A stretch of 64,000 bases of DNA, taken from Diplonema japonicum (taxonomy: Eukaryota; Protista; Euglenozoa: Diplonemea). The first letter of the stretch is position 1; the number at the start of each line of letters is the position of its first letter. Of the stretch, positions 3,001 through 63,317 are shown one piece after another. A model generated the notes under the pieces. The model worked only from the letters and a program-made list of their open reading frames with translations, had not been told where the DNA came from and did no database searches. The stretch lies in contig OZ025678.1 in the NCBI GenBank assembly GCA_964019335.1, positions 248,001-312,000 on the forward strand, given 5' to 3'. Position numbers and translations under genes: made by a program.

Positions 3001-6000
3001 GGGATGGGGATACGAAATGTCGGCAGCGGTAGGCCAGCCTTTCCCGATCGAGACGGTAGTGAAGACAACAGCTGGTTCGCGAGCATGGTCATTCACCACG
3101 GGCACGATGGTGAAGGTGAGCAAGCGCGGCTGGTCTGGGTGCAACGACGGTGGCGACCTTTCAGTGTATGAACTTAAGGCGTCGGCAGCGTCGGACGTTG
3201 TGGCGACAAGGGACGGCACGCTGAGTACAAGCTGGGTGTCAACGACTACACCGTTGGTGGCGACTGACAGAGGTGTCGCGACAGCTTGGCCTGTTTTTAG
3301 CGCGGAGTGCCAAGCCTGCACTTTGCAGCTCGATCTGTGCTACACTGGGAAGACCACAGCGGCCACGTGCAGTGAAGGCCTCGGTGTGGGCTCCAGCGAT
3401 CCCTCAGACAGCATGCCTATCTTCTCCGACAGGACGAAGGTCACGAAGCCTTTCAGTGTGAAGAAGCCGGTCGTGGACTTGGTTGAGATCTACTCACAGA
3501 CGACCCCCACGGCGGAGGAGAAGAAATCCGGAAGGGAGACTATCTACGTCGGTGAAATGTTCAAGGCTGACGTGCAGAACGTACAAGTGTTTGGTGAACC
3601 GAACAGGAAGTGGTCGCTGAACGAGCAGACCGGGACGTCGGCGTGGACGAGGACCATGAGTGTAAGGAGCGTCTGGAAGCCCGCTGCCGGCCATGCGACG
3701 TCAAGTGTTGAGATGCGCTACGGAAACGGCGGATTCATGCTAGACGGCGCGGCTAGGGCGTCAGCAGCCACAGGATGCTCCGCTGCCATCACCACGGTAG
3801 AATTCGAGTCCGCATCGGTGATGCCAGCAACACTGACAGGAGCAACGAGCGGATCGCTTTCGTTCTTCTTCGCGCGCCCATGCCAGAGCTGTGAAGTGTG
3901 GCTAGACTACAAGCTTTCGCCCCCCACTGGCACAATGGGTATGGGTCTTGCAGGCAGGGGGCACATGGGGAGCTTCCCCTTGAGGATGTACACAACGTCA
4001 GGATCGATCCCCATGGTGGGGCAACCCCTTGTGTACATGGTGAAGACATGCGGTACTAGCTGGCTTCTCGGTTCCGTCCCGCCTGTCGCAGTGAGGAGGA
4101 GGACAGCCTTCTCCGTGACAGCCCTCAGAGTGGATACTCACAACTTCCCCTCGTGGGACAGCAAATCGACGGCAGCTCTGTCTCTTAGCACCAACAGTGG
4201 TAACGGCGGCGGTGGGAAGGCCGTGCTCACTTCGCCCACATCCGAATCGTCTGACTCAGCAGTAATGGCACAGGAAGGGAGCGCAACTGCAAGGCTGTTC
4301 CTGACGAGGGCGTGCTACCACTGCGTCCTCACCTTCGCCGGTGTGCGCCACCACTTCACAGTGTTGACAGACCCTAAACAAATCATCGCAATCCCGACTT
4401 TCTCTTCGAAGGAAAGGACGCAGTGGCTGAAGAACGTCGGCGATGTCGGTCAGTGGACCTACGAGATCTACGCCGCGGATGAGCTCGGTGACAGGTCGTA
4501 CGTGGTCGGTGGGCCTACCCCCTTCGCTTTCCAACCGATGTACTCCACCTACAATACTGGAGGCGGTTCCAGAGTGGGCAAGGCACTGTCGCTCTCGGCC
4601 CCAGCCGCTGCCGCCTCACCTTCCGTCACTCTCACAGACGCAACACTCTCTTTGTCTACTCTTACAGCAGGGACACCAAGCACATACAAGATAACTAACG
4701 GATCAGTTGTGCACAATGGTATTCCCATCCCGTCTGTTGGGAACGAACTTGGGATGGTAGGGACGGCCACAGTGGAGCTGAGCGGGGACACCCCTACTGT
4801 TGACTTCCCGCTGCAGTTCACGATGGACGGAGCAAGCGGGGCAGCTGCTACTTTCTGGGGGGAGAAGATGACACCGAAGGTAGACTGGTCGCCCATCGCG
4901 GACAGAATGGCTGTGGATGATCCAGCAAGCAACAGCGCGGCGAGCCCGCAGTGCATGGCGACTGGTATGACCGGCATTGGATCGTGCTACTTCAGCGCAT
5001 ATGCGATTGCGCGCTCCCCGGCCGCGACCTCCGCCACCACCACATGGTACAAGTCCGTGTCAAACGTGGCTGAGAACGTCACAGCGACGGTCACCTGCGC
5101 GGCATGTGCGACCGCTGAGATCCAACCTCCAGCGATGCAATTCTGGAGGGGCGAGGTGAAGTTTATGTTGAACATTCTCACGCTAACGGGAACTGCAGCG
5201 TGCTCCTGCGACGTCACTGTGACACCACCGGCAACCCTCGTGAACGCGACCGCACAGACCTTTACGATATCCGCGACCCCAGCAACAGTGCTGACGTCTG
5301 AAGTGTGGAACTGGGCTCCCTCGACGACAGTGGCTGCTGCAAACGGTGCAGCAAACAGCATCTTGAACCGCTCTGTGTCGTTGTCCTTGATGGCGTGGGA
5401 CAGCACGGAGGCGCAGACTGGGCTTGGTGGACTCACTTGGGCCGCCAACGAGGTTACTTTCGACAGTGCAGGTGTGACTCCCACTGGCTGTTTTGTGTGC
5501 ACGAGCATCCCAATGGCCGGAGTGTGCGGGATCACCGTTGACAGCGCTGGTGGCGACACTGTGAACATTGCGGGTATCTTCACCACAACCGGAACCTGCA
5601 CCATCGCAAGCACCGCCTTTGGAGGCTTCCCTGTTGCGTCGGGGGCTGCAACGGTGAACCCCAAGCAGGCCCTTGCAGTGGACGTCATGACACCGTACGG
5701 GATTCTCCCCGCGGGCCCTGCGGCTGCGATGGGAGAAAAGGAGACTAACTTCACGTGGTTGGGTGGGATGATTGACGACGATGCAGCTGCCATTGTCGGT
5801 GAAGGGACTATCCTGAAGCTGAAGGTGCTGAACCAGAGTGGGGACCACGTGATGGGTGACTACCACACTGAATTCACGCTGACCGGGATGAGGGACGGAA
5901 ACCTCTCGAAGCTCGAAGTGCCCTACTGGCCAACGATGAAGGCGACGGCGAAGGGTGGGTACGTGCAATTCCTTTTGGACACGAACATCACAACCTTCAT

Positions 6001-8340
6001 CGACGACTGTGAGGAGGACGACATCGAGGACTGCCATGCCCCATGGATCTTCAACATCTCTGCGTCCGCGCAGGTGTACGACACGACAGGCCTCATCGGG
6101 ACGCAAGTGTTCTCCGACGTCATCAACGTCGGCCCCTTGTACTTCGTGAGGCAAGTCCGTCACATCGTCGTTGTCGCGGACATTGGAACGGAATGGCCCC
6201 CCAGGTGCGGGGAGATCGATGATAACGACATGCCCGCCAATGAGACGATGCCCCCCATGACAGACTCGCCGGGCAACAAGACGAAGATGGAGTACATGTA
6301 CTGCACCCCCATGGACATGCACCCTGGGACTGGGAGCAGGAAATTGGACAAGATGATCATGGACGGGTATGAGATTCTGAACGTCATGGGAACCGGCATG
6401 GGCCCGTCACCCGGTATGTCCATGGGTATGGGTGGGCCTTCTGGCGACTTCGGCTCTGGCAGAGGCGAGAAACCTGTGGACGGGCTCGGGATGGACTTGT
6501 ACGAAGACGAATGGCTTGCATGGGTAGACATGAACCTGGTGCCGAGGAGGGCAAGCTGGGAACAAGGGTTTAAGTTCAAGATGAAGGTGCTTGCGTTCGA
6601 TACAATGGGTGAGATCGTGGAGAACCCCGGGGACATCGGAAGCAAGGCGAAGATGATGATCAGGCCCCTTGCCGTTCCTTGCTTGAACGTTGACGCGAGC
6701 AACAACGGAGCATGGGTCATGGACACGTGCATTGACGGTGGTGGTGTCTGCAACACGGACCGCTCCATCAGCGCTCTTCCGCAGTGCAGCCAAAAGCTCT
6801 CCGGCTGGTCGTTTGACAGCGAGGAAGTGGAACTAGAGGAAGGGAAGGCGGAGATCGAGGACATTACCTTCAACGGCGGCGGCTGGAAGAGCACGGTAGA
6901 AAGGTTCATGCTCACGACGAACAGCTTCAGCGAAATGAAGGGCGGCGGGAGTTCCGTGGCGACGCTGGACGGGATGACCTTCCTGTTCGAAATGGTGATG
7001 CAGAGGCCGAAGGCTATTTTCCCACTCATGATCGGAAACAAGTGCGACTTGTCGACTAAGAAGTATGTATTTTCAAAACAAAGCAAAACACGAAACCAAC
7101 AGGTGCGATGTGAACGCGACTGTGGAGCCCCAGATGCCGTTCGAATTCCCAGCCGGGATAATCGACAGCTTCGGGCAGCTCATCACCGCCGACTCCACCT
7201 CCAACATCACAGTGACAGGAAAATGCATGGAAGCCGGCGTCACCAACGCTTTCCTCGGAAAGGTCGACCCTGTGACGGGTATTGTGGACCCCACACAGCC
7301 CCTTGTCTTCAAGTTCGAACACGGGATGGCCCACGTCCGCGATATCGGTGTTACCGCGACTTGCAACAAGATGGAGCTTACCATGACGTGTACTAGCGGG
7401 TCCGACGACAAGCTGAAGTTGTGCAACGGGAAATACGGGAAGGGGTACTTCCCTGTGGCGAACCCTCCAGGGAAGACATCCGCGCCCGAGGTACCGCCCA
7501 CGCCTGTCACCACCGAGCTTGACATGGGTATGGAAAAAAAAAAAGGAAATTAAAAAATTCACTCACAGGTTCGATGGACTCTGCGACGTTCAGCAGTTTG
7601 GACACAACGTACGCATCTGACTTCGAGAACAAGATGTTGTCCATGTTGAAGTCTTCGCCGGGGTTGGAGGTATGATTCCGATAGAAAAAAAAAAGGGGGG
7701 GAAAAAAAAAATATTCCTTTCTTTACAGACTGTTGCGACGGTGTTGTTGGAGTTCGTGTGCAATCTCGCAGCGGGGAATTCTATCACAGCGGAGGACAAG
7801 AAGAACCCTGACGTGTGCCATGACTTCCAGGCAACGGCGATGCCCACGACCGCAGCGCCTGTTGTGAACATGAGCAACATCACTACGGGATGGAGGGAGG
7901 CTGAGGAGCTGCAGACAGCCGTCGTGACGAAGGCGCAGTTCCAGGTCGTGACTGCCATTGCGTTGGACCTCACGAAGGTGTCGTCGAAGGTTGCCGCAGC
8001 AATTAAGGAGGATCTGAACAGTACTAATTCTGCGTTGAAGAGTGGTTCATCGACTTTCCAGCAGGCTTCAGGTAACGGGATTTCAGTTGGTGTTCCTGGT
8101 ACACCTACTCCCACCACGGCTATTCCCACTACCAACCAGCCCCCACCTGTCACTCCTGCTCCTGATACCACTGCTCCCACGACTGCCGTGCCAACCGCGC
8201 CACCTACAATGGCACCTGACACTCCCGTGCCCACTCTGCCTAATGTTACTGCGCCTGTTGATGCTGCTCCTGCCCTTCTTGCCCCGAACTCTCTTATTGT
8301 TATCTTGGCGGCTGCCTTGGCAGCGTTCATGCTTTTGTGA
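2..8340 (+). CDS. Giant Ser/Thr/Ala/Gly-rich cell-surface glycoprotein with Pro/Thr stalk and hydrophobic C-terminus (GPI-signal-like); 5' end lies upstream of the window
   Basis: Frame is open from position 2. GT-AG introns 7063-7102, 7528-7568 and 7670-7728 join the ORF pieces in frame. Ends ...PTTAPTTAVPTAPPT...NSLIVILAAALAAFMLL*; many NxS/T sites. Confidence 0.8.
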
Positions 8341-48366: not shown

Positions 48367-49996
48367 ATGGATCCATCGATACTTCAGAAGTACGAGCAAG
48401 GGGAACGCCTCGGGTCCGGCAGACAGGGGTCGGTGTACAAGGTGGTGAGGAGGGTGGATGGAGGTATCTTTGCGATGAAGGTGTTGGAGGCGCCCGCGGA
48501 AGAGGTGCACAGGAAGAACGTGGAGGAGGTGCAGCACATGCTGAAGCTGAAACACAAGAACCTTGTTCCCTGCCTTGACTTCTTCGAGACGACAAAGCAG
48601 CTGGCAAGGGAATCCCTTGGGAAGGTGTGGCGGGTTCACATCGTGATGCCCCTGTACGGAAAAGGGGACCTCTGCTCATGCGTCCAAAAGGAGGGACCCC
48701 TCTCTCCGGAGAGGGCGGACAGGCTCTTGCGGGAGATGGGAGGGGTCCTTCAGTACATTCACAGTGAGGGCTTCATCCACAGGGACGTGAAACCCCAAAA
48801 CATCATGGTGTCGGGGAAGGGACCTCTTTCTGCGGCCAGTGTTACTTGCGGCGGGGAAGGGGAGGCAGAGTTCATCCTGGCCGACCTGGGACTGTCGAAG
48901 GAAGTGTCCTCCGATGGGGTAGCGAACTCCTTTGCAGGCACACCAACTTACATGGCACCCGACTTCTTCAACGAAAAGGACGGCTACACCAACAAAGTAG
49001 ACATGTGGGCCCTCGGGGTGACTGTGTGTAACGTGGTGCTCCAAGAAGACCTGAGGAATCTCTTTCTGAAGTACCTGCATTCTAACCGGGAGCTTGTGAT
49101 GGGGGAGCTTCAGACCCACCTCCCCCCTGCCCTCTTGGGGGTTGTGTCCCGCCTCCTCTCCACCGACCCTTTGGAACGCCCCAGTGCACTGGAGATGCTG
49201 CAGACGAGACCCCCTGGGATGGTTCCTCAGCCAACTGGAATTGTTCTTCTTGCTGTTGGGAGTGTTGGTGGAGAAGAGAGGAAAAGGAAGCTCTGCGTGG
49301 CAGTGGGGGCAGCAAAGGCCTTCTCTTCGATGGGGCAGGAGCTCCTCAGGGTTCGCAGGTTGGAGGTCTTCGACAAGGACTTCGGGGAGTTCGTGGAGGA
49401 GGACGACGGGGACATCGTGTTCCAGGACAAGGGACGGGTCCGTGTCGTGTTTGAAGCACCGCTCCCAACCACCGCTGCTACTTCAACCACAGCTACTTCT
49501 TCAACCACCAGTGACAGCAGCAGCAACATGCACCCACCTGCTGCGAACAACACCACCCTCACAAAAGAGGAGGAGAGGCTTGCCTTGGCCAGTGCTGTTT
49601 CAAAAGGCGACCTTGAGGAGATGAGGCATCTTGTTCTGGAGCGGGGTGTTGACCCTGGTGCAACGGACAGCGATGGTTTCACAGCCCTGCACTATGCAGC
49701 TCGCGGAAACAACTGTGTCGAGGCTGTGGCTGCTCTCGTCTGTTCTTACGACCAGGACCCTGGTGTCAGAAGCAACTATGGTTGGACTCCGGTCCATGAA
49801 GCAGCAGAGAATGGAAGTCTCGAGACAGTTAAATATCTTGTTGAGACTCGCAGTCTCGGCGTAGGTGTCAAAAGCAACGATGGTCGGACACCGCTTCACC
49901 AAGCAGCACTGAAGGGCCACCTCGAGACAGTTAAATATTTTGTTGAAATCAGGAGAGGTGCGGCATCACGCACTCTTTCCGTCTCATACACAAAGA

Positions 49997-50057
<61 letters not shown>

Positions 50058-50168
50058 TGTTGAAACTCGCGGTCAAGACGCTGGTGTCAAATGCAACTAC
50101 GGTCGGACACCGCTTAATCTAGCAGCACTGAACGGTTACCTCGAGACAACTAAATATCTTGTTGAAAC
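48367..50168 (+). CDS. Ser/Thr protein kinase + ankyrin repeats, copy 1; 5' part, interrupted by two retroelement insertions
   Basis: GSGRQG, AMK, HRDVKPQN, DLG, GTPTYMAPD, DMWALG; ankyrin units GxTPLHxAA..GHLETVKYLVE. Confidence 0.85.
49949..50055 (+). mobile_element. Severely 5'-truncated copy (about 45 nt + poly-A) of the adjacent non-LTR retrotransposon
   Basis: CAGGAGAGGTGCGGCATCACGCACTCTTTCCGTCTCATACAC is identical to 57500-57541, followed by poly-A. Flanked by TTGTTGAAA on both sides (49940-49948, 50057-50065). Confidence 0.9.
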
Positions 50169-50656
50169 AAACTGTACTTTGTACTGTACTTTACTGTACT
50201 GTACTTTATTGGCTGCTCCCCGTGGCCAATAAGGTTCCTACAGGGAGTCAACGGGGCTGTCTTCCCTTATTACACACCTCGCCCCCCACACACACAAAAA
50301 AAAAAAAAGAAAGAATATTGTAATTGTAATAGTTGTTTGCTGGTGACCGGTGAACGGTGCTGGTGGTGTTGGCTGAGCGGGCTGGTTTAGCTGATTGGTT
50401 GAATTGAATTGATTTGAGTTGAATTGAGTTGTGTTGTCTGCTGGTGAGTGGTGATTGGTGCTGGTGTTGGTAGTATTGGTTGAGCTGGTTGGTTTGATTG
50501 CAAGAATTGAACAGAAGTGTTGGAGAACGCTAGATCCCTCCTTCCTTCCCTTCCTCTTTCATTCCTTCCCTTCCTTCCTATTCTACTGCTGCATTTCCTC
50601 GTCATCATCATCATCATCATCATCATTTATTCTCGTCTTCTTCCGCCACTGTCAGT

Positions 50657-52525
50657 ATGAACGTCAACCTCATACTGGACAAGCTGGAGAGCTTGAAGGG
50701 AGGGTCCCTTACGGTGGAGGTGAGGACCCAGATATATCGGATGATCAACCTGATCACCGATATGATGGTGGCGGAGATGGGGCAGGGGCCGGCCCTGCAG
50801 GTGTCTACACCGGCGCGGAGGACGCAGCCGGAGCCGCAGCAGCCGCCCGTGCTGACGCCGGGGCCATGGAGGACGCCGCGGAGGGCTCCACGGACCCCCG
50901 GGAAGCCGACGAAGGGGAAGTGGAGCGACCCCAGAAGGAGCGGCAGGGGAGCCTGCGAGGGAGGCGAGACTGGTCCCGGGTGACTGGTTGCTTCCTGTGC
51001 TGGAGGAGGCAGGGGACGAGGGGGTACTGCTGGTGCCCGAAGGGGGAGAGGCCGAGGCCTACGACGCCGCCGCAGACAGCTGCGCGGACAAGCTGTTGCA
51101 GAGCAGCAACGGCACGTGGGTCCTGCTGACGCGGAGGAGGGTCAAGGCCCTCAACGGAGGGCTGCCACACGCCCATGAGAACGTGAGGATGGCGGTGCCA
51201 GTGGGCCTGAAGGCACCGAAGACACTATTCGTGACAGTGTTGGGAAGTTCCCTGAAGGGGGACTCCTGACTGGGGTGCAGCAGCCGCAGCTTCCGACCGC
51301 AGAACCGACGGGGGAGGCTACAGCAGAGGCCCTGAAGAAGCAGCGGACGGTGGTGATGTCGGCAGTGCTTGCCGCCAAGCACATCCAGAAGAAGGAGCCG
51401 GGGGTCTGGGCTCAATTGGTGGACCAACAGGTGGGAGGCGAGTGTGCAAAGCGCGAGGTGGCGCACGCAGCAAGGAACGTGGGAGTGGTGCTGCACCCCA
51501 CGTACATGTGGGGGGTCACCCGGGAGCAGGGACGGGTGGAACTGATGCTGAGGACGAAGCCGGCGGAAGCTGAAAAGCTTCTTCGCGCCTCAGGACACGG
51601 AAGGGTCTTCTTCAAGGCGCACTCATTCAACAGGGGGAGAGAGCTTGCGGCCGACTCCATTTGCTGGCTGAAGAAGGAAGTCCCGGTGGAGGAAGCACGG
51701 AGGGCGGCGCTGACGCACCAGGTGGGACTCGCCTACACCAAGTCGCGGCTTGGGATCAGGCTCTCATCGCCGGAGCTCAGGGCGGCGTTGGAGATCTCCA
51801 GTGGGGACCTCTTAGAAGAGCCGAGGCCGAGGCGGAACCGGTACATAGTTACTGGAGGAAAAATGCACGATCACACGGATGACGTACTAGCGGAGCTGCG
51901 GACGGCAGGGTGGAACTGTGCCAGCGCCGCCACGTTCGTCAGGCGGGGAAGCGGTGCGCGCACCTTCGTTGTCTGGGCGGAGCAGGGTCCGAGTTTTGGG
52001 ATGTTCGGCAGGGATGGAGAGCTCGAGCCGCTCAGGGTGAGGCAGGCGGTGGACAGCGTGAGGCCCCAGGGGCAGAAGAGATGGAACGGCCCCACCAGGG
52101 GCGTGCGGTTGCCGAGGAGGGTAGGGGACCCCTCTGACCGGCCCCCGGTGCAAGCTAGCTCCCCTCCCCGTGCGACAGGGGTGAACCCCGGCCCTACGGC
52201 AGAAACGGGTGTGGAGGCCGCGTCGTCGTCGTCGTCGTCGTCGTCAAGGATGGACGATGGGGAAGGGACGGTGGAACGGGACGGGAGAAAGCGCCCGCAT
52301 TCGGAGAGGTCGCCGGAGACGGCCTGTCTGGCGGAGAAGAAGGTCCACACGCACGAGTGGCCCGAGAAGAGCGGGGAGGCGGCGACGGAGAGCTGGGTGT
52401 GCAGCGGATGCGGTGACAAACGCCCCAGGACAAGGCCGAGGGAATGCTCGTGCGGCATGTGCATCTGTGTGGGGTGCTACACGAAAGTGCGCAGGGAAGG
52501 CGAGGCGAAGGCGAAGGAGGAATGA
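50657..52525 (+). CDS. Retrotransposon ORF1 (two apparent frameshifts near 50945 and 51257), C-terminal Cys-rich finger
   Basis: Consecutive ORF pieces 50657-50983, 50988-51269 and 51275-52525; ends WVCSGC..ECSCGMCICVGC. Confidence 0.6.
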
Positions 52526-52549
52526 CTATTCCTTCCTTCCTTTGCGCGC

Positions 52550-55500
52550 GTGCTCCGCTGTGTGCGGTTGTTGTTGGTGTTGTTGTTGTTCCTACTACTT
52601 CTTCTTCTTCCTCTTCATCTTCTTCTTCTCGGGTATGTTGGAGGAGCGACGGGCGCAGCGGGGGAATCGCGCGGATGGATGCACAAGGAGCTCGCTCTCT
52701 TCACCTGTCTCTTGTGGCACAACAACAGCATGGCCGATGTGAAGCAGGATCCGAGGACCCGCTCGACTGTGGTAAGACAGCTCCTGCTGCTCGCAGGCGA
52801 TGTGGAGCGCAACCCGGGGCCACAGTTGGTGGTTGGCACGCAAAACGTGACTTCCTGCAACTCGCAGATTGCAGCGATTCAAGGCATCCTGGAGGCAACG
52901 GGGACGCACGTGATGGGGATCACTGAGACGCGTGTCCTGCGTGCCGGGAGAGCCTTCGTGGAGAATGCGATGGCGGAGAGCGGGATGCGGGTGCTTTGGG
53001 CCGAAGCAGCTGATGTAGGACCAAATCTCTACTCGTGCAGCAGCAGAGGGGTGGCGCTACTGCTCCCTCGAGAGGCTCTTGCCTGGACCGTCACGCCGAA
53101 CGATGAAGATACGCTGCTTTACGTCAACGAGGGCAGGCTTGGGCACTACGAGGTAGCATGCGGGGAAGGAGGCAACACGGTGCACATCTTGCTCGTTTAC
53201 GCATACCAGCAGAGGGAGGCGAGTAGGCGGGAGGCTCTGCTCAGGACGGTCTTCCGGTACGCGGCGGGACTGGGGCAAGTGCCAGTGGTGGTCATGGGGG
53301 ACATGAATGCCGATGGTGAAAGATCGAAGGCGCTGCACGCCGCAGTAATCGGGGGATGGACCGATGCATCGCTGGAGTGTGCGGAGAGAGAAGGACGGGA
53401 TCCACCGGTGACGTATCGGCGCAGCGAGGAGAGTCAGGACGGAACGCGGATCGACATGATCCTGCTCAATCAGGTGGCGGCAACAGGCCTGAGATCGTCG
53501 AGCACCGTGGAGACCAGCTTCCCTCAACACTGTACGGTAACGGCGGAGCTGGGGACGGAGGCGTTCAGTCAGGCGTGCCTCGCATACAGGCTTCCGAAAG
53601 CCATCGACGTGGACAGCTGGCCGACGTGGTCTAACGAGGAAGAGGACGAACTGGCGGAGGAGTGCGCACGGGGGTGTGAGGCGCCTTCCCCGGGGTGGCA
53701 GGGGAGTGGGCTAACGTGACGGCCGCCATGGAGGAATACCTGCTCCGAAGAGACAGCGAAGTGACCCACACGCGAGGGCATCGGGGAAGGGGTGCTCTCC
53801 GGGAACCGATTGTCTCGAAGGTGGCTGTCGAGACCCGGTGCAAAGGGAGCGGGGAAGCGACGCTGCGCCAGGTCCACGTCATGAAGGCGTTGAACAAGAC
53901 GGGGGCCGTCCTGAGGATGATGAGGACAGCGGAGACGACGGGGATCGCACTCGCTGCGTTGCGGGAGCCGCGGAAACGAGGCAAGTAGGTGTTGGGCCAA
54001 TGCGAGAAGGCAGAGGACGCTCGCAGGCCCACACTTGCCGGACGACACACAGTGGCCAGTAATACTTCCCTCTCGAGAACACATGGAAGGACTGGTACGT
54101 CTTGTGGGCGAGGTGGGAAGGAACCTCGCGGCCTCGGCAGCATCCGAGAAGATGAGGTCGTGGAGGGGGAGACTGGAGCGTGAGTTCCAGCGGGGAGGAA
54201 CGCAGCTGGCGAGGATGGTAAGGGGAGATGAACCGAGATGCGGCCTTACCATGCTGCGGCGAGACGACGGCTCGACGACAGCGGATGTGTCGGAGATAGA
54301 CGATGCGTGCATCGAGGCGTGGGGTCCGGTCATGAGGATGTATGACCGCGACAACCCCGAGCCAGCATGGGCCCCTTTCGCGGAGCGTTTCGGGCGGTAC
54401 GTGCCCCACCGAGAACAAGAGCTGGACGACATCACCGCGGACGAGATTAGCGCGGTGCTGAAGACGAGGACGCGCGGGGCCTGTGGGGTGGACGGATGGC
54501 GGCTGAAGGAGCTGAAGAAGATACCAACACCGTTGCTCCAGAGGCTCGCACATTTCTATAACAGGGTGGAGGAGGAAGGGGCTTGGCCCCCAGCACTCAT
54601 GACTGCGCTTGTGTCGCTCATTCCGAAGGGGGAAGGAAAACGACCGCTGCAACAACGTCCCATCACCGTGACGTCGCTGATCTACAGGACATGGGCCACG
54701 GTGCGCGTGCTACGATGGCAGGAGGAATGGATTCACCCCACGCAGAGTGGCTTCCGGAAGGGAAAGTCAACGTACAACACGGTGATGCAGATCTCGCTGC
54801 AGATCGAGGAGTCCCTCCTCACAGGGAAGCCGCTTCACGGCCTGGCCCTGGACTACGCCAAGTGCTTTGACAGGGTGCCGAGGGAGGTCACACTGAAGCT
54901 CCTGGAGACGATGGGAATGTCGGAACGAGTGCTGCGGCCTTTGAGAGCTGTCTACGGCGGGCTCCGGCGGAGGTTCAAGTACGCCCTGGGTGTGGGCCGT
55001 GCCTTTGAGACCACGAATGGTGTGCTACAGGGATGCCCCCTCTCCGTGGTGCTCATCAACGCGCTGATCAGTGTGTGGGCGCGAGCGATTGAGGGGGAGC
55101 ATCCAGGCGTGCTCACACCTTCGTATGCGGATGACGGCTACCTGGTTTCTCTGGAAGGACATGCGAAGGTACAGGCGGCAGCCGACCTTACCAACGAGTT
55201 CTGCGTGCTCACTGGCATGGCACTGAACGAGGGGAAGACATTCGCCTTCAGCACGGCCAAGAAAGCGAAGAAGGTACGGAACAGCAGGACTGGAGGCCAC
55301 TTCCCTGCGACAGAGAGGGTCGCGTGTTTGGGGTGCACGCTGGTGACCACGAATAGCGCGAGACAAGTCGATGAGCGAGTACGGGCGGCGACAAGGAGGG
55401 TCGCGAACCTGGGAGGTGTCCCGCTTCCGTTCGACGTAAAGACGATGCTCCATGGATCGATCTGCACGAGCTCCGTCCTGTACAGCGCACCCTTCAACAG

Positions 55501-57388
55501 ATGCAGTGCGGCCGCCAGGGTCGCGTACGTGGACGAGTCGGTGTTGAGCCTGTGGGGGCACGACACGGGGAGATCGAGGAGGTGCAACAAGGCGGTGCTG
55601 GTGGTTGCGGGGTACTCTCACCGCAACTACATGAACGTAGCGGAGCGGTACCGGAGGGTGCAGTTCGCTGCGGTGCAGTGCAGGAGAGATGCTGGTCTGG
55701 TGACGAGGCTGAACGAGGTGAAAGCCCTCTACGACAAGAGAGGCGTGTCACCTTCCGTTGCAGGGAACTATGCTGACGAACGGGGTCCGGTCGGCCTTCT
55801 GGTCGCCGACCTGAAGTCAGTGGGACTGATGTGGGAACACGACCTCCGGGCTCTGAGGACCGAGAACGGAGACGTGGTTGACCCCTTGGCCATGGAGCCA
55901 CGCGAGTGGGAACACTATGTGCGCGTCCTGCTGAAGAAGCAGGCGTTTGCGGAGGTGGTGAAACTGAGGCCAGAATATGCCGGCATCGAAGGGGGCGTGG
56001 ATTTTGTGGCGACGAACTCGCTCCGCAGGAAGACTGGCTCGTACGCTGTGCAGAGAAGCCTGCTGAAGATCGTGACGGCCGGGGTCGTGACGAACGACTA
56101 CCTGTCACACGCGAGCAGGGGGAACATCGGGGAGGAATGTGAGCTGTGCGAGAGTGGGGAAAGAGAGACCCGGGAACACCTGTGGTGGCACTGTGACGCC
56201 TACGCCGACATCCGTGCCGAATATGGACTCAACGCTGAGACTGCGGCGGGTTGGCCGAGCTGTCTGCGGACCCTGGGGGTGATGCCAAAGGACTTCAACA
56301 CCGGAGATCGCACCCTTCTCGCGGAGAAGGTGCAGGCGATGATGTGCGCGATCAACAGCAAGAGACTTTCCTTTGTGGACAACAAAAGAACCCTCCGCCT
56401 GCGGACACCGCCGTGGGATGCAGTGGCTGGGGTGCCGGGCACCAGGCACGAGTCCCCTTTTAGGGGCAAGTTGCCGGCGGGCGGGCTGTGGGTCTGGGAC
56501 GCCAGTCATTTCTTGGCGCTGAACGACTGGCTGTCCATGCTCGAGTGGACGGACGAGGGGCAAATATCAAGTGTCGAGCTTGCCATCGACTACGAGGCGT
56601 TCTCGGGTCTTCGGATCGAGAAGACGGTAGGCTTCCGCCGCCGGACCGTAGGGACGACAGGGCCGCTGACCTTGAAAGAGAGAAGCGGTGAGCTTTACTT
56701 CATGCTGGAACGCATGAGAATGATGAGAGAGAGGTTTGGGAACGAGACCCCGCTGATACCGGCCGAGATGGGTCAAGTGACGTGCCTGGCGCGGGTGGGT
56801 GGCCCGCTGCAGCTCTACGGCTACAGGAGAAGGCCGCGGTTTGTGTCGATGGGCACGACCGCCGTCGTCGAGAAGATCCTGCAGAAGGGTGTGAGCGAGC
56901 TGTTGGCGGGTACGACGTGGGGGACTGGCCTCTACCCCGAGTACCCCGAGACCGACCACAGCGAGCAGCACTGGGCAGACCTTGTTGAGAGGCTGGAGGG
57001 GAGAGAGGACGAGGGAGCGGTGCAGGACCCTGTGTACTGCCCCCCGGGGGTGCTCACCTTTACAGGGACGCACTGGACCGGGAGCACCACGTGCAGGCGA
57101 CATCGGAAGCCGAAATGCGACCGATGTGGGAACGCGCCGAAGAAGGCCGCGATTACCCTGGATGCGTGCTGCCGCGCGCACCACCACGAAGCGGATGGGC
57201 TGCCCGTGAGGGTATGCGAGGCCCACTCCATGACAGTTTGCGGGAAGTGTTCGTCGCTTGTGCGATGCTGCAAGAAGCACCATGTGTGCAAAAGGCATGC
57301 GGAGAGGACTTGCTCTATATGCAAGGAGGGGACGGAACTGGTGGACCGGTTACCGTCTGCTTGCTGTGCGAAGGGCCATCATGGCTAG
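52550..57388 (+). CDS. Retrotransposon ORF2: 2A-like peptide, AP endonuclease, reverse transcriptase, CCHC finger (frameshifts near 53700 and 53970)
   Basis: APE motifs GTQNV, GITET, MGDMNA, RIDMI, PQH. RT motifs QRPITVTS, QSGFRKG, LDYAKCFDRV, GVLQGCPLS, YADD. Finger CELC..ETREHLWWHC. No RNase H recognised. Confidence 0.88.
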
Positions 57389-57540
57389 CGGACCGCCAGG
57401 CCGCCCGAGCAGTGACTGCCTGAACAAGGCCGCGTCGCCGACGCAACGTCACCCTACACCCTGCACCCTACGTCCCTTTTCCTACACCCTCCCCTACACC
57501 AGGAGAGGTGCGGCATCACGCACTCTTTCCGTCTCATACA

Positions 57541-57582
<42 letters not shown>

Positions 57583-57584
<2 letters not shown>

Positions 57585-57893
57585 TGTTGAAACTCGCGGT
57601 CTCGACGCAGGTGTCATGTGCAACAACGGTCGGACACCGCTTCATCGGGCAGCACTGAACGGCCACCTCGAAACAATTAAATATCTTGTTGAAACTCTCG
57701 GTCTCGACGCAGGTGTCAAAAGCAACGACGGTCGGACACCGGTTCATCAAGCAGCACTGAAAGGCCACCTCGAAACAATTAAATATGTTGAAACTCTCGG
57801 TCTCGACGCAGGTGTAAATGCAACGACGGTCGGACACCGCTTGCTCTAGCCAAAATGAGCGGAAACCCCAAGTTGGTTAGTTATCTGTCTTAG
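57583..57893 (+). pseudogene. Displaced 3' ankyrin repeats of kinase-ankyrin copy 1
   Basis: LVETRGLDAGVMCNNGRTPLHRAA...; frameshift near 57815, after which the alternative frame ends GRTPLALAKMSGNPKLVSYLS*. Confidence 0.8.
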
Positions 57894-58448
57894 GCAATAT
57901 GGGAGTAAAGAGAAGCTCCCCATTTAAAAGACTAACCCAAAGAGCGATTTTATTTAATAAATGAAAAAACGCTTTATGCTATGAAGCATCAATGAAAAAA
58001 AAGAATGAAAAAGAAGAGGAGAAATAAAAAACATGAAGTGTTATAAGAGAAAAACTACCAACCCACCCTGTGCACCGAGTAATCGTTTTATCCATTCTCG
58101 AATGGTGCTCTGCCACTGAAGTCTCGCTTCTGGTGCTAGATATGTGGGTCTTCGCGCTCCGGGGTGGAAGGGGTGGTGGAAACATTTGAAAAATAAAATA
58201 TAAAAAACAGTGATCCTTTATGGTTTTAAAAAAAAGAAAAGAAAACCGACAACCAACAAAAAAGAATAAAATTCTACCTATTAACGAGAAAGTGTTCCCC
58301 CTTTTTTTTCACTCCAAAACGCGTCCACCGATATGGTTCCCTTCCCCCCCCCCTTTTTTTTTAATGTGTCTTTCTTTTGTAGATAAGTACTTCAGGCAAG
58401 GTAGAAATATAAAAAGAAATTTAAAAAAAAAAAAAAAGGAACTAACCG

Positions 58449-60969: not shown

Positions 60970-61376
60970 ATAATAAAATAAAAGCAGATCTCTGCACACC
61001 ACCCCTCCCACAATCATCCCTCACCCCATGATGAGCTTTTTGAAAACGTTACGGGAGGGAAAATACGAAACCATTTTCCCTGTTTTTTTTTTTTTTTTTC
61101 CTTTCTTTTCTTTTTAACTCTTGTTCCATTTTTTTTTATTGCTTGGGGGAAGAGGAGCTTCGTTCTCTTTTCTTTCCTCCATTTCCAAATTTCTTTTTTC
61201 AGTGAGCACTCCCCCTTGCACACTGAAACTTTATCGAATTCCTTTTTGCAAAAAAAGGGAAGCCGCATTGCCTTCTTCCCTTTTTTTCTTCCAAAACCGC
61301 GTGATATTTTGAATTGTATTATTGTTATTTGTTTTTCTTGTTCTCCCCTCCATTCTTAATCACTTCAGCTACCTGC

Positions 61377-61377
<1 letters not shown>

Positions 61378-61437
<60 letters not shown>
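61378..61437 (+). repeat. (CAA)20 microsatellite immediately upstream of the kinase copy 2 start
   Basis: Direct count; the paralogous position 48346-48363 has (CAA)6. Confidence 0.9.
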
Positions 61438-61439
<2 letters not shown>

Positions 61440-61440
61440 T

Positions 61441-63317
61441 ATGGATCCATCGATACTTCAGAAGTACGAGCAAGGGGAGCGCCTCGGGTCCGGCAGACAG
61501 GGATCAGTGTACAAGGTGGTGAGGAGGGTGGATGGAGGTATCTTTGCGATGAAGGTGTTGGAGGCGCCGCGGAAGAGGTGCACAAGAAGAACGTGGAGGA
61601 GGTGCAGCACATGCTGAAGCTGAAACACAAGAACCTTGTTCCCTGCCTTGACTTCTTCGAGACGACAAAGCAGCTGGCAAGGGAATCCCTTGGGAAGGTG
61701 TGGCGGGTTCACATCGTGATGCCCCTGTACGGAAAAGGGGACCTCTGCTCATGCGTCCAAAAGGAGGGACCCCTCTCTCCGGAGAGGGCGGACAGGCTCT
61801 TGCGGGAGATGGGAGGGGTCCTTCAGTACATTCACAGTGAGGGCTTCATCCACAGGGACGTGAAACCCCAAAACATCATGGTGTCGGGGAAGGGACCTCT
61901 TTCTGCGGCCAGTGTTACTTGCGGCGGGGAAGGGGAGGCAGAGTTCATCCTGGCCGACCTGGGACTGTCGAAGGAGGTGTCCTCCGATGGGGTAGCGAAC
62001 TCCTTTGCAGGCACACCAGCTTACATGGCACCCGACTTCTTCAACGGAAAGGACGGCTACACCAACAAAGTAGACATGTGGGCCCTCGGGGTGACTGTGT
62101 GCAACGTGGTGCTCCAAGAAGACCTGAGGAATCTCTTTCTGAAGTACCTGCATTCTAACCGGGAGCTTGTGATGGGGAAGCTTCAGACCCACCTCCCCCC
62201 TGCCCTCTTGGGGGTTGTGTCCCGCCTCCTCTCCACCGACCCTTTGGAACGCCCCAGTGCACTGGAGATGCTGCAGACGAGACCCCCTGGGATGGTTCCT
62301 CAGCCAACCGGAAAAAAGGTTCTTCTTGCTGTTGGGAGTGTTGGTGGAGAAGAGAGGAAAAGGAAGCTCTGCGTGGCAGTGGGGGCAGGAGCGGAGGAGG
62401 TTCGGATGGCGGCAGCAAAGGCCTTCTCTTCGATGGGGCAGGAGCTCCTCAGGGTTCGCAGGTTGGAGGTCTTCGACAAGGACTTCGGGGAGTTCGTGGA
62501 GGAGGACGACGGGGACATCGTGTTCCAGGACAAGGGACGGGTCCGTGTCGTGTTTGAAGCACCGCTCCCAACCACCGCTGCTACTTCAACCACCAGTGAC
62601 AGCAGCAGCAACACGCACCCACCTGCTGCGAACAACACCACCCTCACAAAAGAGGAGGGGAGGCTTGCCTTGGTCAGTGCTGTTTCAAAAGGCGACCTTG
62701 AGGAGATGAGGCATCTTGTTCTGGAGCGGGGTGTTGACCCTGGTGCAACGGACAGCGATGGTTTCACAGCCCTGCACTATGCAGCTCGCGGAAACAACTG
62801 TGTCGAGGCTGTGGCTGCTCTCGTCTGTTCTTACGACCAGGACCCTGGTGTCAGAAGCAACGACGGTTGGACTCCGGTCCATGAAGCAGCAGAGTATGGA
62901 AGTCTCGAGACAGTTAAATATCTTGTTGAAACTCGCAGTCTCGACGCAGGTGTCAAAAGCAACGATGGTCGGACACCGGTTCATCTAGCAGCACAGTACG
63001 GCCACCTCGAAACAATTAAATATCTTGTTGAAACTCTCGGTCGTCTCGACGCAGGTGTCAAAAGCAACGATGGTTGGACACCGGTTCATCTAGCAGCAGA
63101 GAACGGCCACCTCGAAACAATTAAATATTTTGTTGAAACTCTCGGTCTCGACGCAGGTGTCAAAAGCAACGATGGTTGGACACCGGTTCATCAAGCAGCA
63201 CAGAACGGCCACCTCGAAACAATTAAATATCTTGTTGAAACTCTCGGTCGTCTCGACGCAGGTGTCAAAAGCAACGATGGTTGGACACCGCTTCAATTTC
63301 TGCGTTCCATTTATTAA
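61441..63317 (+). CDS. Ser/Thr kinase + ankyrin repeats, copy 2 (1-nt deletion near 61567 relative to copy 1; no retroelement insertion)
   Basis: ATGGATCCATCG start as in copy 1; GCGCCGCGG versus GCGCCCGCGG; tandem 99-102 bp ankyrin units about 62850-63293. Confidence 0.8.

Follow-up and report, generated by a model that had tools for sequence, protein, structure and literature searches.

In the diplonemid Diplonema japonicum, a gene for a protein kinase with ankyrin repeats is interrupted twice, at the same position of neighbouring repeat units, by inserts with a common 3' end. This locus raises the question of whether a retrotransposon can use a protein-coding repeat as its specific target, or whether the pattern is a product of duplication, recombination or misassembly. 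The window analyzed is a stretch of 64,000 nt containing this gene and a paralog. The pattern is very probably that of a sequence-specific APE-type non-LTR retrotransposon (LINE) of a diplonemid that inserts into an ankyrin motif by target-primed reverse transcription. Its site, orientation, target duplications, domains, recent near-identical copies and transcripts were all observed.

Two inserts in a kinase-ankyrin gene

The features of the interrupted gene and its paralog are as follows.

48367..49949, + strand: 5' part of the host gene, protein kinase domain and ankyrin repeats (Pfam Pkinase 3.5e-46, Ank_2 3e-31; ORF list)
49939..49948, + strand: upstream target duplication of the short insert (TTTGTTGAAA; one mismatch to 50056-50065)
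49950-50055, + strand: short tail-only copy with A-rich tail (direct reading)
49950..49994, + strand: final 45 nt of the element, beginning 2 nt 5' of the 3' hairpin (identical to 57500-57544)
49995..50055, + strand: tail of the short copy, rich in A: GAC followed by 58 A (direct reading)
50056..50066, + strand: downstream target duplication of the short insert (CTTGTTGAAA = 50056-50065; direct reading)
50158..50168, + strand: upstream 11-bp target duplication of the full element (CTTGTTGAAAC; direct reading and public contigs)
50169..57582, + strand: full-length non-LTR retrotransposon, 7414 bp including A41
57542..57582, + strand: poly-A of the full element, 41 A (direct reading)
57583..57593, + strand: downstream 11-bp target duplication of the full element, same 11 nt as upstream
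57583..57895, + strand: severed 3' part of the host gene, three further ankyrin units, the last ones with a 3-nt deletion and a frameshift
62916..63241, + strand: four empty target sites of the kinase-ankyrin paralog 61314-63317

The first-pass annotation had described two inserts sharing a 3' end at one site of the ankyrin units, each with its own target duplication. Both points hold: 45 nt are identical, CTTGTTGAAACTCGCGGT lies directly 3' of both poly-A tails, and the duplications (49939-49948/50056-50065 and 50158-50168/57583-57593) are separate for each insert and 10–11 bp long. The CTTGTTGAAAC sequence abutted by both tails encodes L-V-E-T of an ankyrin unit. The short copy had been placed from 49949; the copy is present, but it starts at 49950, and the T at 49949 is either host DNA or an extra base. 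In silico excision of each insert with one duplication restores uninterrupted, in-phase 34-residue ankyrin units. The paralog, 96% identical, aligns gap-free over both insertion positions, which bears out the empty sites reported there and places them at 62916, 63018, 63123, and 63225.

Target motif and genome-wide census

On sequence evidence, the insertion target is a 17-nt motif, AAATAT^CTYRTYGAAAC, coding for K-Y-L-V/I-E-T in a single young ankyrin-repeat family. This family is found mostly within kinase-ankyrin genes, and CTNGTNGAAAC is the sequence in the ankyrin arrays that is abutted by the element poly-A. A genome census, which is a lower bound, identified at least about 16 independent insertions of the element family on six contigs of the 62.5-Mb genome (15 on-target and one off-target). 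The on-target events comprise 13 clusters of 300-nt downstream flanks that are less than 80% identical to one another (58–80%), one copy known only by its 5' end (C60:26492), and one 23-nt copy on C72. The off-target copy, on C112, has the target duplication GTTAAAG. The insertion nucleotide TAT^CTY and the sense orientation are common to 15 of the 16 events; as read from the DNA, such use of one nucleotide and one orientation in a multicopy target meets the criterion for a sequence-specific LINE.

The first-pass annotation had asked for the flanks of other copies and would have been refuted by unrelated ones. Among the matches listed, the poly-A adjoins CTYRTYGAAAC of an ankyrin unit at all family 3' ends but one, and that scenario fails. 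Every recovered 5' junction lies in the same motif, 8–11 nt further on, including those of copies cut at element positions 3049, 3249, and the window equivalent of 57385. The target duplications follow the local target variant (CTTGTT, CTTATT, CTCGTC, or CTCGTT). For the 20-nt tail probe, at least 21 copies were found at 0–1 mismatch, and its reversed control matched only at 2–3 mismatches. Unoccupied 17-nt sites number 139 in the 62.5-Mb genome versus none in the reversed control, a single oriented match is expected by chance at about 1e-6, and the AARTAYYTNRTYGARAY motif occurs eight times in the window versus zero in 100 shuffles. The earlier proposal of an ankyrin-coding multicopy target is supported, in a narrower form: only the 17-nt motif of one young subfamily is used, not ankyrin arrays generally. 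No published report of this kind of target for a retrotransposon was found in the literature searched.

Recent activity is evident from four long copies that are 99.3–99.9% identical with pure A23–A41 tails, and from the transcriptome proteins P0001 and P0002, which are 99–100% identical to the element reverse transcriptase (RT). Otherwise, the nearest database proteins are unnamed or automatically named Diplonema and metagenome sequences with 29–46% identity.

Under target-primed reverse transcription, the bottom strand would always be nicked opposite TAT^CTY, the freed 3' end would prime cDNA synthesis on the poly-A tail, and a top-strand cut 8–11 nt further on would generate the target duplication. 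The primer end (…CAAG-3') lacks a T run able to pair with the poly-A. The asymmetry of the target places all copies in the sense orientation of a transcribed host gene, so that host transcription can include the element. The endonuclease, perhaps together with cysteine-rich domains, may read the motif, as in R1 and TRAS. Such recognition is inferred only; no nicking data exist, and the DNA reveals just an invariant bottom-strand position.

Element anatomy and tail-only copies

The copy in the window is the only one in the assembly with both ends, which are unlike each other (a spliced-leader remnant versus a hairpin and A41). Its components are as follows.

50169..50211, + strand: 5' end, made of stuttered pieces and closing with CTGTACTTTATTG, the 3'-terminal 13 nt of the 39-nt spliced leader
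51275..52525, + strand: ORF1, 416 codons, cysteine-rich C-terminus
52550..53719, + strand: frame holding the APE-type endonuclease (Pfam Exo_endo_phos 2.4e-6)
52799..52822, + strand: 2A ribosome-skipping motif DVERNPGP, just 5' of the endonuclease
53700..54034, + strand: APE-RT linker, resembling the linker of related one-ORF elements only in a frame that differs from both neighbours
54035..57388, + strand: RT frame (first Met 54083; YADD 55127; CCHC motif 56138; cysteine-rich C-terminus)
57502..57530, + strand: 3' hairpin, 11 bp with one bulge and a 6-nt loop, 11 nt 5' of the poly-A (fold -17.8 kcal/mol, z -3.9)

The 39-nt spliced leader of this genome was read from six genomic places. The same 13-nt remnant heads the copy at C60:26492 and would fit an mRNA template. 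No ribozyme or other known RNA was detected by Rfam at the element 5' end, and no Pfam family matched ORF1. The endonuclease retains the GD.N, D, and H columns, and its structure model (core pLDDT above 90) has the human L1 endonuclease as top fold match (prob 1.00, TM 0.75–0.77). The RT domain matches Pfam RVT_1 (4.2e-20), and its best solved relative is human L1 ORF2p (2e-18, versus 3e-8 for R2). No RNase H domain was found by Pfam in the element. With RVT_1, YADD, and the L1 ORF2p and L1 endonuclease matches, the criteria for an APE-type LINE (an RT with a YxDD box and an upstream APE) are met. Those for a LINE with a restriction-like endonuclease (C-terminal endonuclease, no APE) are not, as the APE is N-terminal to the RT. 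The remaining LINE criterion (poly-A 3' end, variable 5' truncation, target duplications, and no terminal repeats) is likewise met by the structure of the copies.

ORF1, APE, and RT are each open, but APE, linker, and RT lie in separate frames or ORFs in the four long copies. In all four, the linker is in another reading frame, with several stops when read in the frame of its neighbours. The upstream limit of the RT frame is the same in the other long copy on C31 and shorter in the two long copies on C60; all three start after ORF1. Because no copy in the assembly has been shown to encode a contiguous APE-RT protein, the long copies may have been mobilized in trans, or recoding or separate translation may be needed.

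The 45-nt form accounts for nine events, namely the window copy and eight other independent loci with differing flanks (<80% identical), duplications, and poly-A lengths. Tail-only copies begin at 57500 or 57502, the 5' base of the stable 3' hairpin, and show few junction types (GAAA+CAGGAG, GAAA+GGAGAGG, and single extra bases). Microhomology was rejected as a sufficient cause of this fixed start, since the junction overlap is only 1–2 nt. Selection for in-frame inserts was rejected as well, since the frame is kept in only about 5 of the 11 short events. The 45-nt copies may derive from a fragment of the tail RNA, or synthesis may have been aborted; in either case the 3' hairpin would set the limit. 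The hairpin is presumably bound by the RT, and the fixed product points to an RNA element that this enzyme recognizes.

The suggestion that insertion can truncate or change kinase-ankyrin genes is supported. The host frame (48367-50232) runs through the short copy, whose A-rich tail is read as a lysine run, and stops at 50232 inside the long copy. In several paralogs, in-frame tail-only inserts correspond to lysine-rich linkers of 20–40 residues, and long kinase-ankyrin reading frames still contain old mini-insertions that keep the frame. Some tiny copies are, as predicted from these frames, now read as part of host proteins. A protein search for transcripts with an exonized insert, using a C60 kinase-ankyrin frame, returned only distant ankyrin proteins (≤43% identity), except for a partial match (50% over 36% of the query) in a list swamped by generic repeats. 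A search for other nick-site "scars" with the same kind of 3-nt deletion was negative. P0044, a Diplonema papillatum gene model with an RT fused to ankyrin repeats, shows no KYLVET junction in its protein sequence alone.

A second, unrelated poly-A sequence (family B) occurs at the identical nucleotide in three arrays. Its loci, like C60:33-41 kb, were seen only within 1.5 kb of each match. No coding capacity has been shown for it, and Rfam detected no known RNA or ribozyme in it. Its interpretation as a related LINE, based on an RT C-terminus 5' of the C11 copy, was rejected, as a search of its own genome assigned this ORF to an adjoining abundant dispersed LINE.

Competing explanations and related elements

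One or a few old insertions could have been spread by segmental duplication, unequal crossing-over, or gene conversion, so that site specificity is only apparent. Duplication after insertion is real in this genome: one short insert is present on C60 in eight copies that have the same diagnostic changes, the same A12 tail, and flanks 97–100% identical, and a 4.1-kb copy occurs twice within a 9.1-kb segmental duplication. Even with such duplicates collapsed, however, the 13 clusters with 58–80% identical flanks remain, and their inserts are nearly identical to the active element. Moreover, the copies differ in their truncation points (1, 3049, 3249, about 7217, and 7332/7334), in their poly-A lengths (A12–A58), and in target duplications that each match the local target. 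This explanation is largely refuted and appears very improbable. A purely local artifact, in which the window is misassembled or the short copy duplicates the 3' junction of the long copy, can draw on the near-identical 102-bp ankyrin repeats of the host and on the A58 tract. It can nevertheless be practically dismissed. Public contigs from three runs in two studies cross the 5' junction 50168/50169 without mismatch, and a 316-nt contig reaches from the host flank into the short copy, whose 5' side is thereby bridged by 30 nt. The 3' side has no such bridge, because A58 breaks all public contigs; the public runs consist of short contigs only, and provide neither RNA ends nor expression levels. 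Local duplication, which the first-pass annotation had named as a possible refutation, fails because eight further loci carry the 45-nt form, with flanks, duplications, and poly-A lengths that differ. In addition, host DNA continues straight into element position 7332, a junction that unequal crossing-over could not create, and a tail-only copy near a long copy is found again at C31:393459/394041 and on C60.

Homology-guided insertion is harder to set aside, albeit still unlikely. Templates carrying ankyrin sequence, whether element transcripts with read-through or host mRNAs in which the 45-nt insert and A run are already present, would anneal to the arrays and be resolved by recombination or repair without endonuclease specificity. 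This would also account for the fixed 5' end and the few junction types of tail-only copies; all copies are co-oriented with transcribed host genes, and the in-frame tail inserts of host paralogs would be present in abundant mRNAs. Nevertheless, long copies with unrelated 5' truncations share a precise 3' boundary and 8–11 bp duplications, which indicate staggered nicks rather than recombination. The poly-A lengths of 12 to 58 resemble those of real tails, family B uses the identical nucleotide, and the off-target copy also has a target duplication.

Beyond sequence-specific target-primed insertion itself, a broader interpretation can be offered only tentatively. It envisages an endonuclease-defined landing pad in coding DNA, with a LINE specialized on a protein-coding tandem repeat, a regular hairpin-delimited 45-nt product, a nick site shared with at least one unrelated poly-A sequence, and mini-insertions kept in frame as lysine-rich linkers in kinase-ankyrin proteins. 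If true, the element would be a parasite living in a safe haven that, at the same time, repeatedly generates variation in a host protein family. Apart from this interpretation, the reading frames show a direct link from transposon activity to protein change by two routes, with a full copy truncating a kinase-ankyrin gene and tail-only copies adding lysine-rich linkers of 20–40 residues in frame.

The prevailing view is that site-specific retrotransposons persist by occupying redundant targets that encode no protein, among them rDNA, small-RNA genes, telomeres, and microsatellites. This rule is widened by a LINE on a protein-coding repeat. The element also offers a natural case of an APE endonuclease with an inferred recognition site of roughly 17 bp, useful for understanding, and perhaps borrowing, target recognition. 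Close parallels are R1, TRAS, and SART of insects, which share the combination of APE and RT, a poly-A-type 3' end, a one-nucleotide bottom-strand nick in a multicopy tandem target, a fixed orientation, short target duplications, and common 5'-truncated copies. Work from the Fujiwara laboratory reportedly attributes their specificity to the endonuclease. Their targets are 28S rDNA or telomeric, whereas here the target is a protein-coding ankyrin motif in a euglenozoan host. Human L1 ORF2p is the best solved match for the RT sequence and endonuclease fold, and L1 likewise primes in a poly-A-dependent manner, is variably truncated at its 5' end, and makes target duplications; however, L1 uses a loose TTTT/AA consensus genome-wide, in contrast to 15 of 16 events at one 17-nt motif. 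L1Tc and Ingi of trypanosomatids have only a loose insertion-site preference. They resemble the present element in their euglenozoan host, APE-type organization, poly-A tail, transcription within host polycistronic units, and a 2A peptide 5' of the endonuclease, a motif known from both (PMC3708506). Unlike them, with their single ORF and RNase H, the present element has separate frames, no RNase H by Pfam, and a strict site. SLACS, CZAR, and CRE reside in euglenozoan spliced-leader genes, and together with R2 they share a strict site in a multicopy host gene and co-transcription with it. They differ in having a C-terminal restriction-like endonuclease and no APE, whereas the APE fold here is N-terminal and the RT is nearer to L1 ORF2p. 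The "R2" names carried by Diplonema papillatum homologs are automatic labels.

Two insertions in a kinase-ankyrin gene

The host gene encodes a protein kinase domain (Pkinase, 3.5e-46) followed by ankyrin repeats (Ank_2, 3e-31), with 34-residue units that end in ...L-E-T-V/I-K-Y-L-V-E-T. Consecutive units are interrupted at the identical point (K-Y^L-V-E-T), with one insert in each, and CTTGTTGAAACTCGCGGT directly follows the poly-A tail of both.

48367: start of the host gene
49950-50055: short copy, the element's last 45 nt and an A-rich tail including 58 pure A
50169-57582: long copy, 7414 bp, with 41 A at its 3' end
57583-57895: last three ankyrin units of the host gene
61314-63317: paralogue, 96% identical to the host gene

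Each insert has its own target duplication: 10 bp with one mismatch at the short copy and a perfect 11 bp at the long copy. Removal of each insert and one duplication by a script left the ankyrin units uninterrupted and in phase. The paralogue aligns without gaps over both insertion points and has four free target sites (i.e., the motif without an insert). The tails, duplications, restored units, and paralogue alignment confirm what the first-pass annotation had read as two insertions at one ankyrin position, and the empty sites that it saw in the paralogue are also borne out. The short copy adds 117 nt in the host frame, which encode a lysine run, and the frame stays open through it. The frame ends at a stop (50232) within the long copy, such that the last three units are cut off; the anticipated truncation of a kinase-ankyrin gene thus holds at this locus.

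Public contigs from three runs in two studies cross the 5' junction of the long copy (50168/50169) without mismatch, and a contig of 316 nt extends from host DNA into the short copy by 30 nt. All public contigs break at the A58 tract of the short copy. These contigs also include sequence flanking other copies, as well as empty sites of paralogues. In two runs, contigs join 49940 to 50195, skipping 254 nt, and this joint could not be matched to a known copy or allele.

Two further features of this locus were observed. One unit downstream of the full element (57780-57800) lacks exactly CTT 3' of the nick position and reads K-Y-V-E-T, perhaps as a scar of repair; no further CTT deletion at the nick site came up in a pattern search. 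In addition, the paralogue has a one-base shift near its start (61314-61700) relative to the host gene, which places its N-terminal kinase part out of frame. The paralogue could be a pseudogene or have a different start.

Structure and coding capacity of the element

The long insert is a non-LTR retrotransposon with the following features.

50169-50211: stuttered 5' head, 43 nt, with the final 13 nt of the genome's 39-nt spliced leader at its 3' end
between the 5' head and ORF1: long leader region
51275-52525: ORF1, with no Pfam family
52799-52822: 2A ribosome-skipping motif DVERNPGP
57452-57499: C-rich heptamer repeats (CACCCTR-like) of the 3' untranslated region, immediately 5' of the hairpin
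57502-57530: 11-bp 3' hairpin (-17.8 kcal/mol, z -3.9), followed by 11 nt and the poly-A

The spliced leader sequence was taken from six genomic places that bear the leader followed by GT. Both 5'-complete copies (50169-50211 in the window and local positions 2488-2515 of stretch L027) open with stuttered pieces, GTACT / ACTGTACTTT, and end in the 13 nt of the leader. Because no AG precedes the element body, the same point cannot be spliced again, and the regeneration of the 5' end remains unexplained.

An in-frame stop separates ORF1 from the 2A motif and endonuclease (region 52523-52822). A 2A motif of this kind is known in Ingi and L1Tc (PMC3708506). The APE endonuclease (Pfam, 2.4e-6) has conserved catalytic columns in an alignment with 24 relatives, and its AlphaFold core (pLDDT >90) has the human L1 endonuclease as the best fold match (probability 1.00, TM 0.75-0.77). 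The reverse transcriptase (RT; RVT_1, 4e-20) has YADD and a CCHC motif, and the best match among solved relatives is L1 ORF2p (2e-18, against 3e-8 for R2). The best protein hits were to Diplonema papillatum and, like the spliced leader, are consistent with a diplonemid host. The RT frame is 99-100% identical to two transcriptome-derived proteins, indicating that the element family is transcribed.

Similarity of the APE-RT linker (53700-54034) to the linkers of related single-ORF elements is seen only in a frame that differs from those of both neighbours. The upstream limit of the RT frame is the same in the other long copy on contig C31, and the open frame is slightly shorter in the two long C60 copies; the arrangement appears to be common to the long copies that cover it. 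The first Met of the RT frame is at 54083, where one transcriptome protein also starts. Recoding, separate RT translation, and trans-mobilisation are all compatible with this frame split and remain open.

Target specificity across the genome

A 20-nt tail probe was searched against the 62.5-Mb assembly, in which the window belongs to contig 31, with the reversed probe as a control; only the best candidates were scored, and the counts are lower bounds. At least 21 copies were found at 0-1 mismatch, whereas the reversed control matched only at 2-3 mismatches. Every flank was read, and copies were clustered by the 300 nt on their downstream side. Eight C60 copies represent a single old insert multiplied by gene duplication, and a 4.1-kb copy was duplicated once. 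Collapsing these duplicates left 13 clusters with flanks just 58-80% identical to each other. Adding a C60 copy whose 5' end is intact and a copy of 23 nt on C72 brings the total to at least 15 independent events on target (contigs 31, 60, 68, 72, and 105). The poly-A abuts the ankyrin motif in all copies except one on C112 (C112:167051, minus strand; stretch L055), which is about 300 nt long, has an internal deletion and its own 7-bp duplication (GTTAAAG), and lacks an ankyrin flank. Only 139 free copies of the motif AAATATCTYRTYGAAAC are present genome-wide (reversed control, 0), and a random oriented insertion would hit it with odds of about one in a million. Accordingly, 15 of 16 events on target cannot be attributed to chance, which, with the divergent flanks, supports the earlier proposal of an ankyrin-coding repeat as a multicopy target.

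Every on-target poly-A is followed by C-T-Y-R-T-Y-G-A-A-A, with the first C missing in two, and the upstream junctions lie after GA, GAAA, or GAAAC of the identical motif. The duplicated bases are those of the local target variant (CTTGTT, CTTATT, CTCGTC, or CTCGTT). This rule also holds for copies whose 5' truncation falls at element positions 3049, 3249, and ~7217. The constant 3' boundary across truncation types indicates a fixed bottom-strand nick opposite TAT^CTY; the position of the top-strand cut differs by up to 3 nt, which fits target-primed reverse transcription. The four long copies share 99.3-99.9% identity and have tails of pure A23-A41, indicating recent activity.

A genome search for poly-A abutting the target motif revealed a second sequence, family B, which is up to ~570 nt long, is unrelated to the element, and has a different tail. 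It had no match in Rfam, and no coding capacity was seen.

L084:1471-1690 (C68): family B copy, at the ankyrin site (C68:349141)
L081:1230-1770 (C72): family B copy, at the ankyrin site (C72:173250)
L082:1222-1803 (C116): family B copy, at the ankyrin site (C116:82633)
L083:1300-1770 (C11): family B copy, away from this site

The three on-target copies occupy the identical ankyrin nucleotide and have duplications; two of them have flanks 90% identical and may be paralogous. An RT fragment beside the C11 copy belongs to an adjacent abundant LINE rather than family B. The shared nucleotide supports a protein-defined nick site over pairing between element RNA and target, and cannot distinguish mobilisation in trans from a remnant of a sister element. 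Separately, a poly-A run lies next to the target motif at C60:40266 (L071:1250-1520). The 1.2 kb upstream is low-complexity and non-coding, contains several A tracts, and lacks an ankyrin flank; this run may derive from a further retro-copied RNA or from rearrangement of an array.

In mechanism, the element is nearest to the APE-type LINEs R1, TRAS, and SART, whose single fixed nick falls in a multicopy tandem repeat. By host and 2A motif, it is nearest to Ingi and L1Tc, and it is not of the R2 type. Full-text literature searches for an ankyrin or protein-coding LINE target found nothing relevant, and the D. papillatum genome paper mentions LINE-like gene models in general terms only (PMC10161547). 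The evidence supports a site-specific LINE whose target is of a new class, with clade placement not established. A D. papillatum gene model (P0044) has an RT 34% identical to that of the element, fused to two ankyrin repeats, and might mark a related ankyrin-associated element in a second species.

Tail-only copies and possible effects on host proteins

Nine of the 15 on-target events are the same 45-nt product, starting at the equivalent of 57500 (CAGGAG...) or 57502 (GGAGAGG...), i.e., two nt upstream of the hairpin's 5' base or at the base itself. Some have a single extra base, and one has 49 extra nt. Random 5' truncation cannot yield this fixed start, microhomology overlaps by just 1-2 nt, and selection for frame does not account for it, as the reading frame is kept in only about 5 of the 11 short events. 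Our best guess, by inference, is that the hairpin and tail form the RNA portion held by the reverse transcriptase, and that the minimal insert would then derive either from a protected fragment left by decay or processing or from aborted synthesis. Alternatively, such copies may have been made from host mRNAs already bearing the insert via homology-guided repair, which is likewise inferred.

Copies cluster at four loci: within one array, a tail-only copy is separated from another copy by one to five ankyrin units, which may reflect few target arrays or local reinsertion.

C31:393459/394041: clustered copies
C60:190603/195083: clustered copies
C68:348710/348929: clustered copies
window: short and long copies

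Several C60 paralogues have open frames of 577-791 or more residues through old in-frame inserts at K-Y^L-V-E-T.

L040, L041, L044, L056, L062 (C60): old in-frame inserts
L026:2470-2530: old in-frame insert

Together with the truncation by the full copy, these inserts indicate that the element truncates genes and also leaves linker peptides that are tolerated, with protein production not shown. One kind of old insert is a decayed 45-nt tail that adds about 18 residues with lysines at the end. The second kind, an A-rich piece of 39 nt, is unrelated to it and of unknown origin; one gene contains this piece twice.
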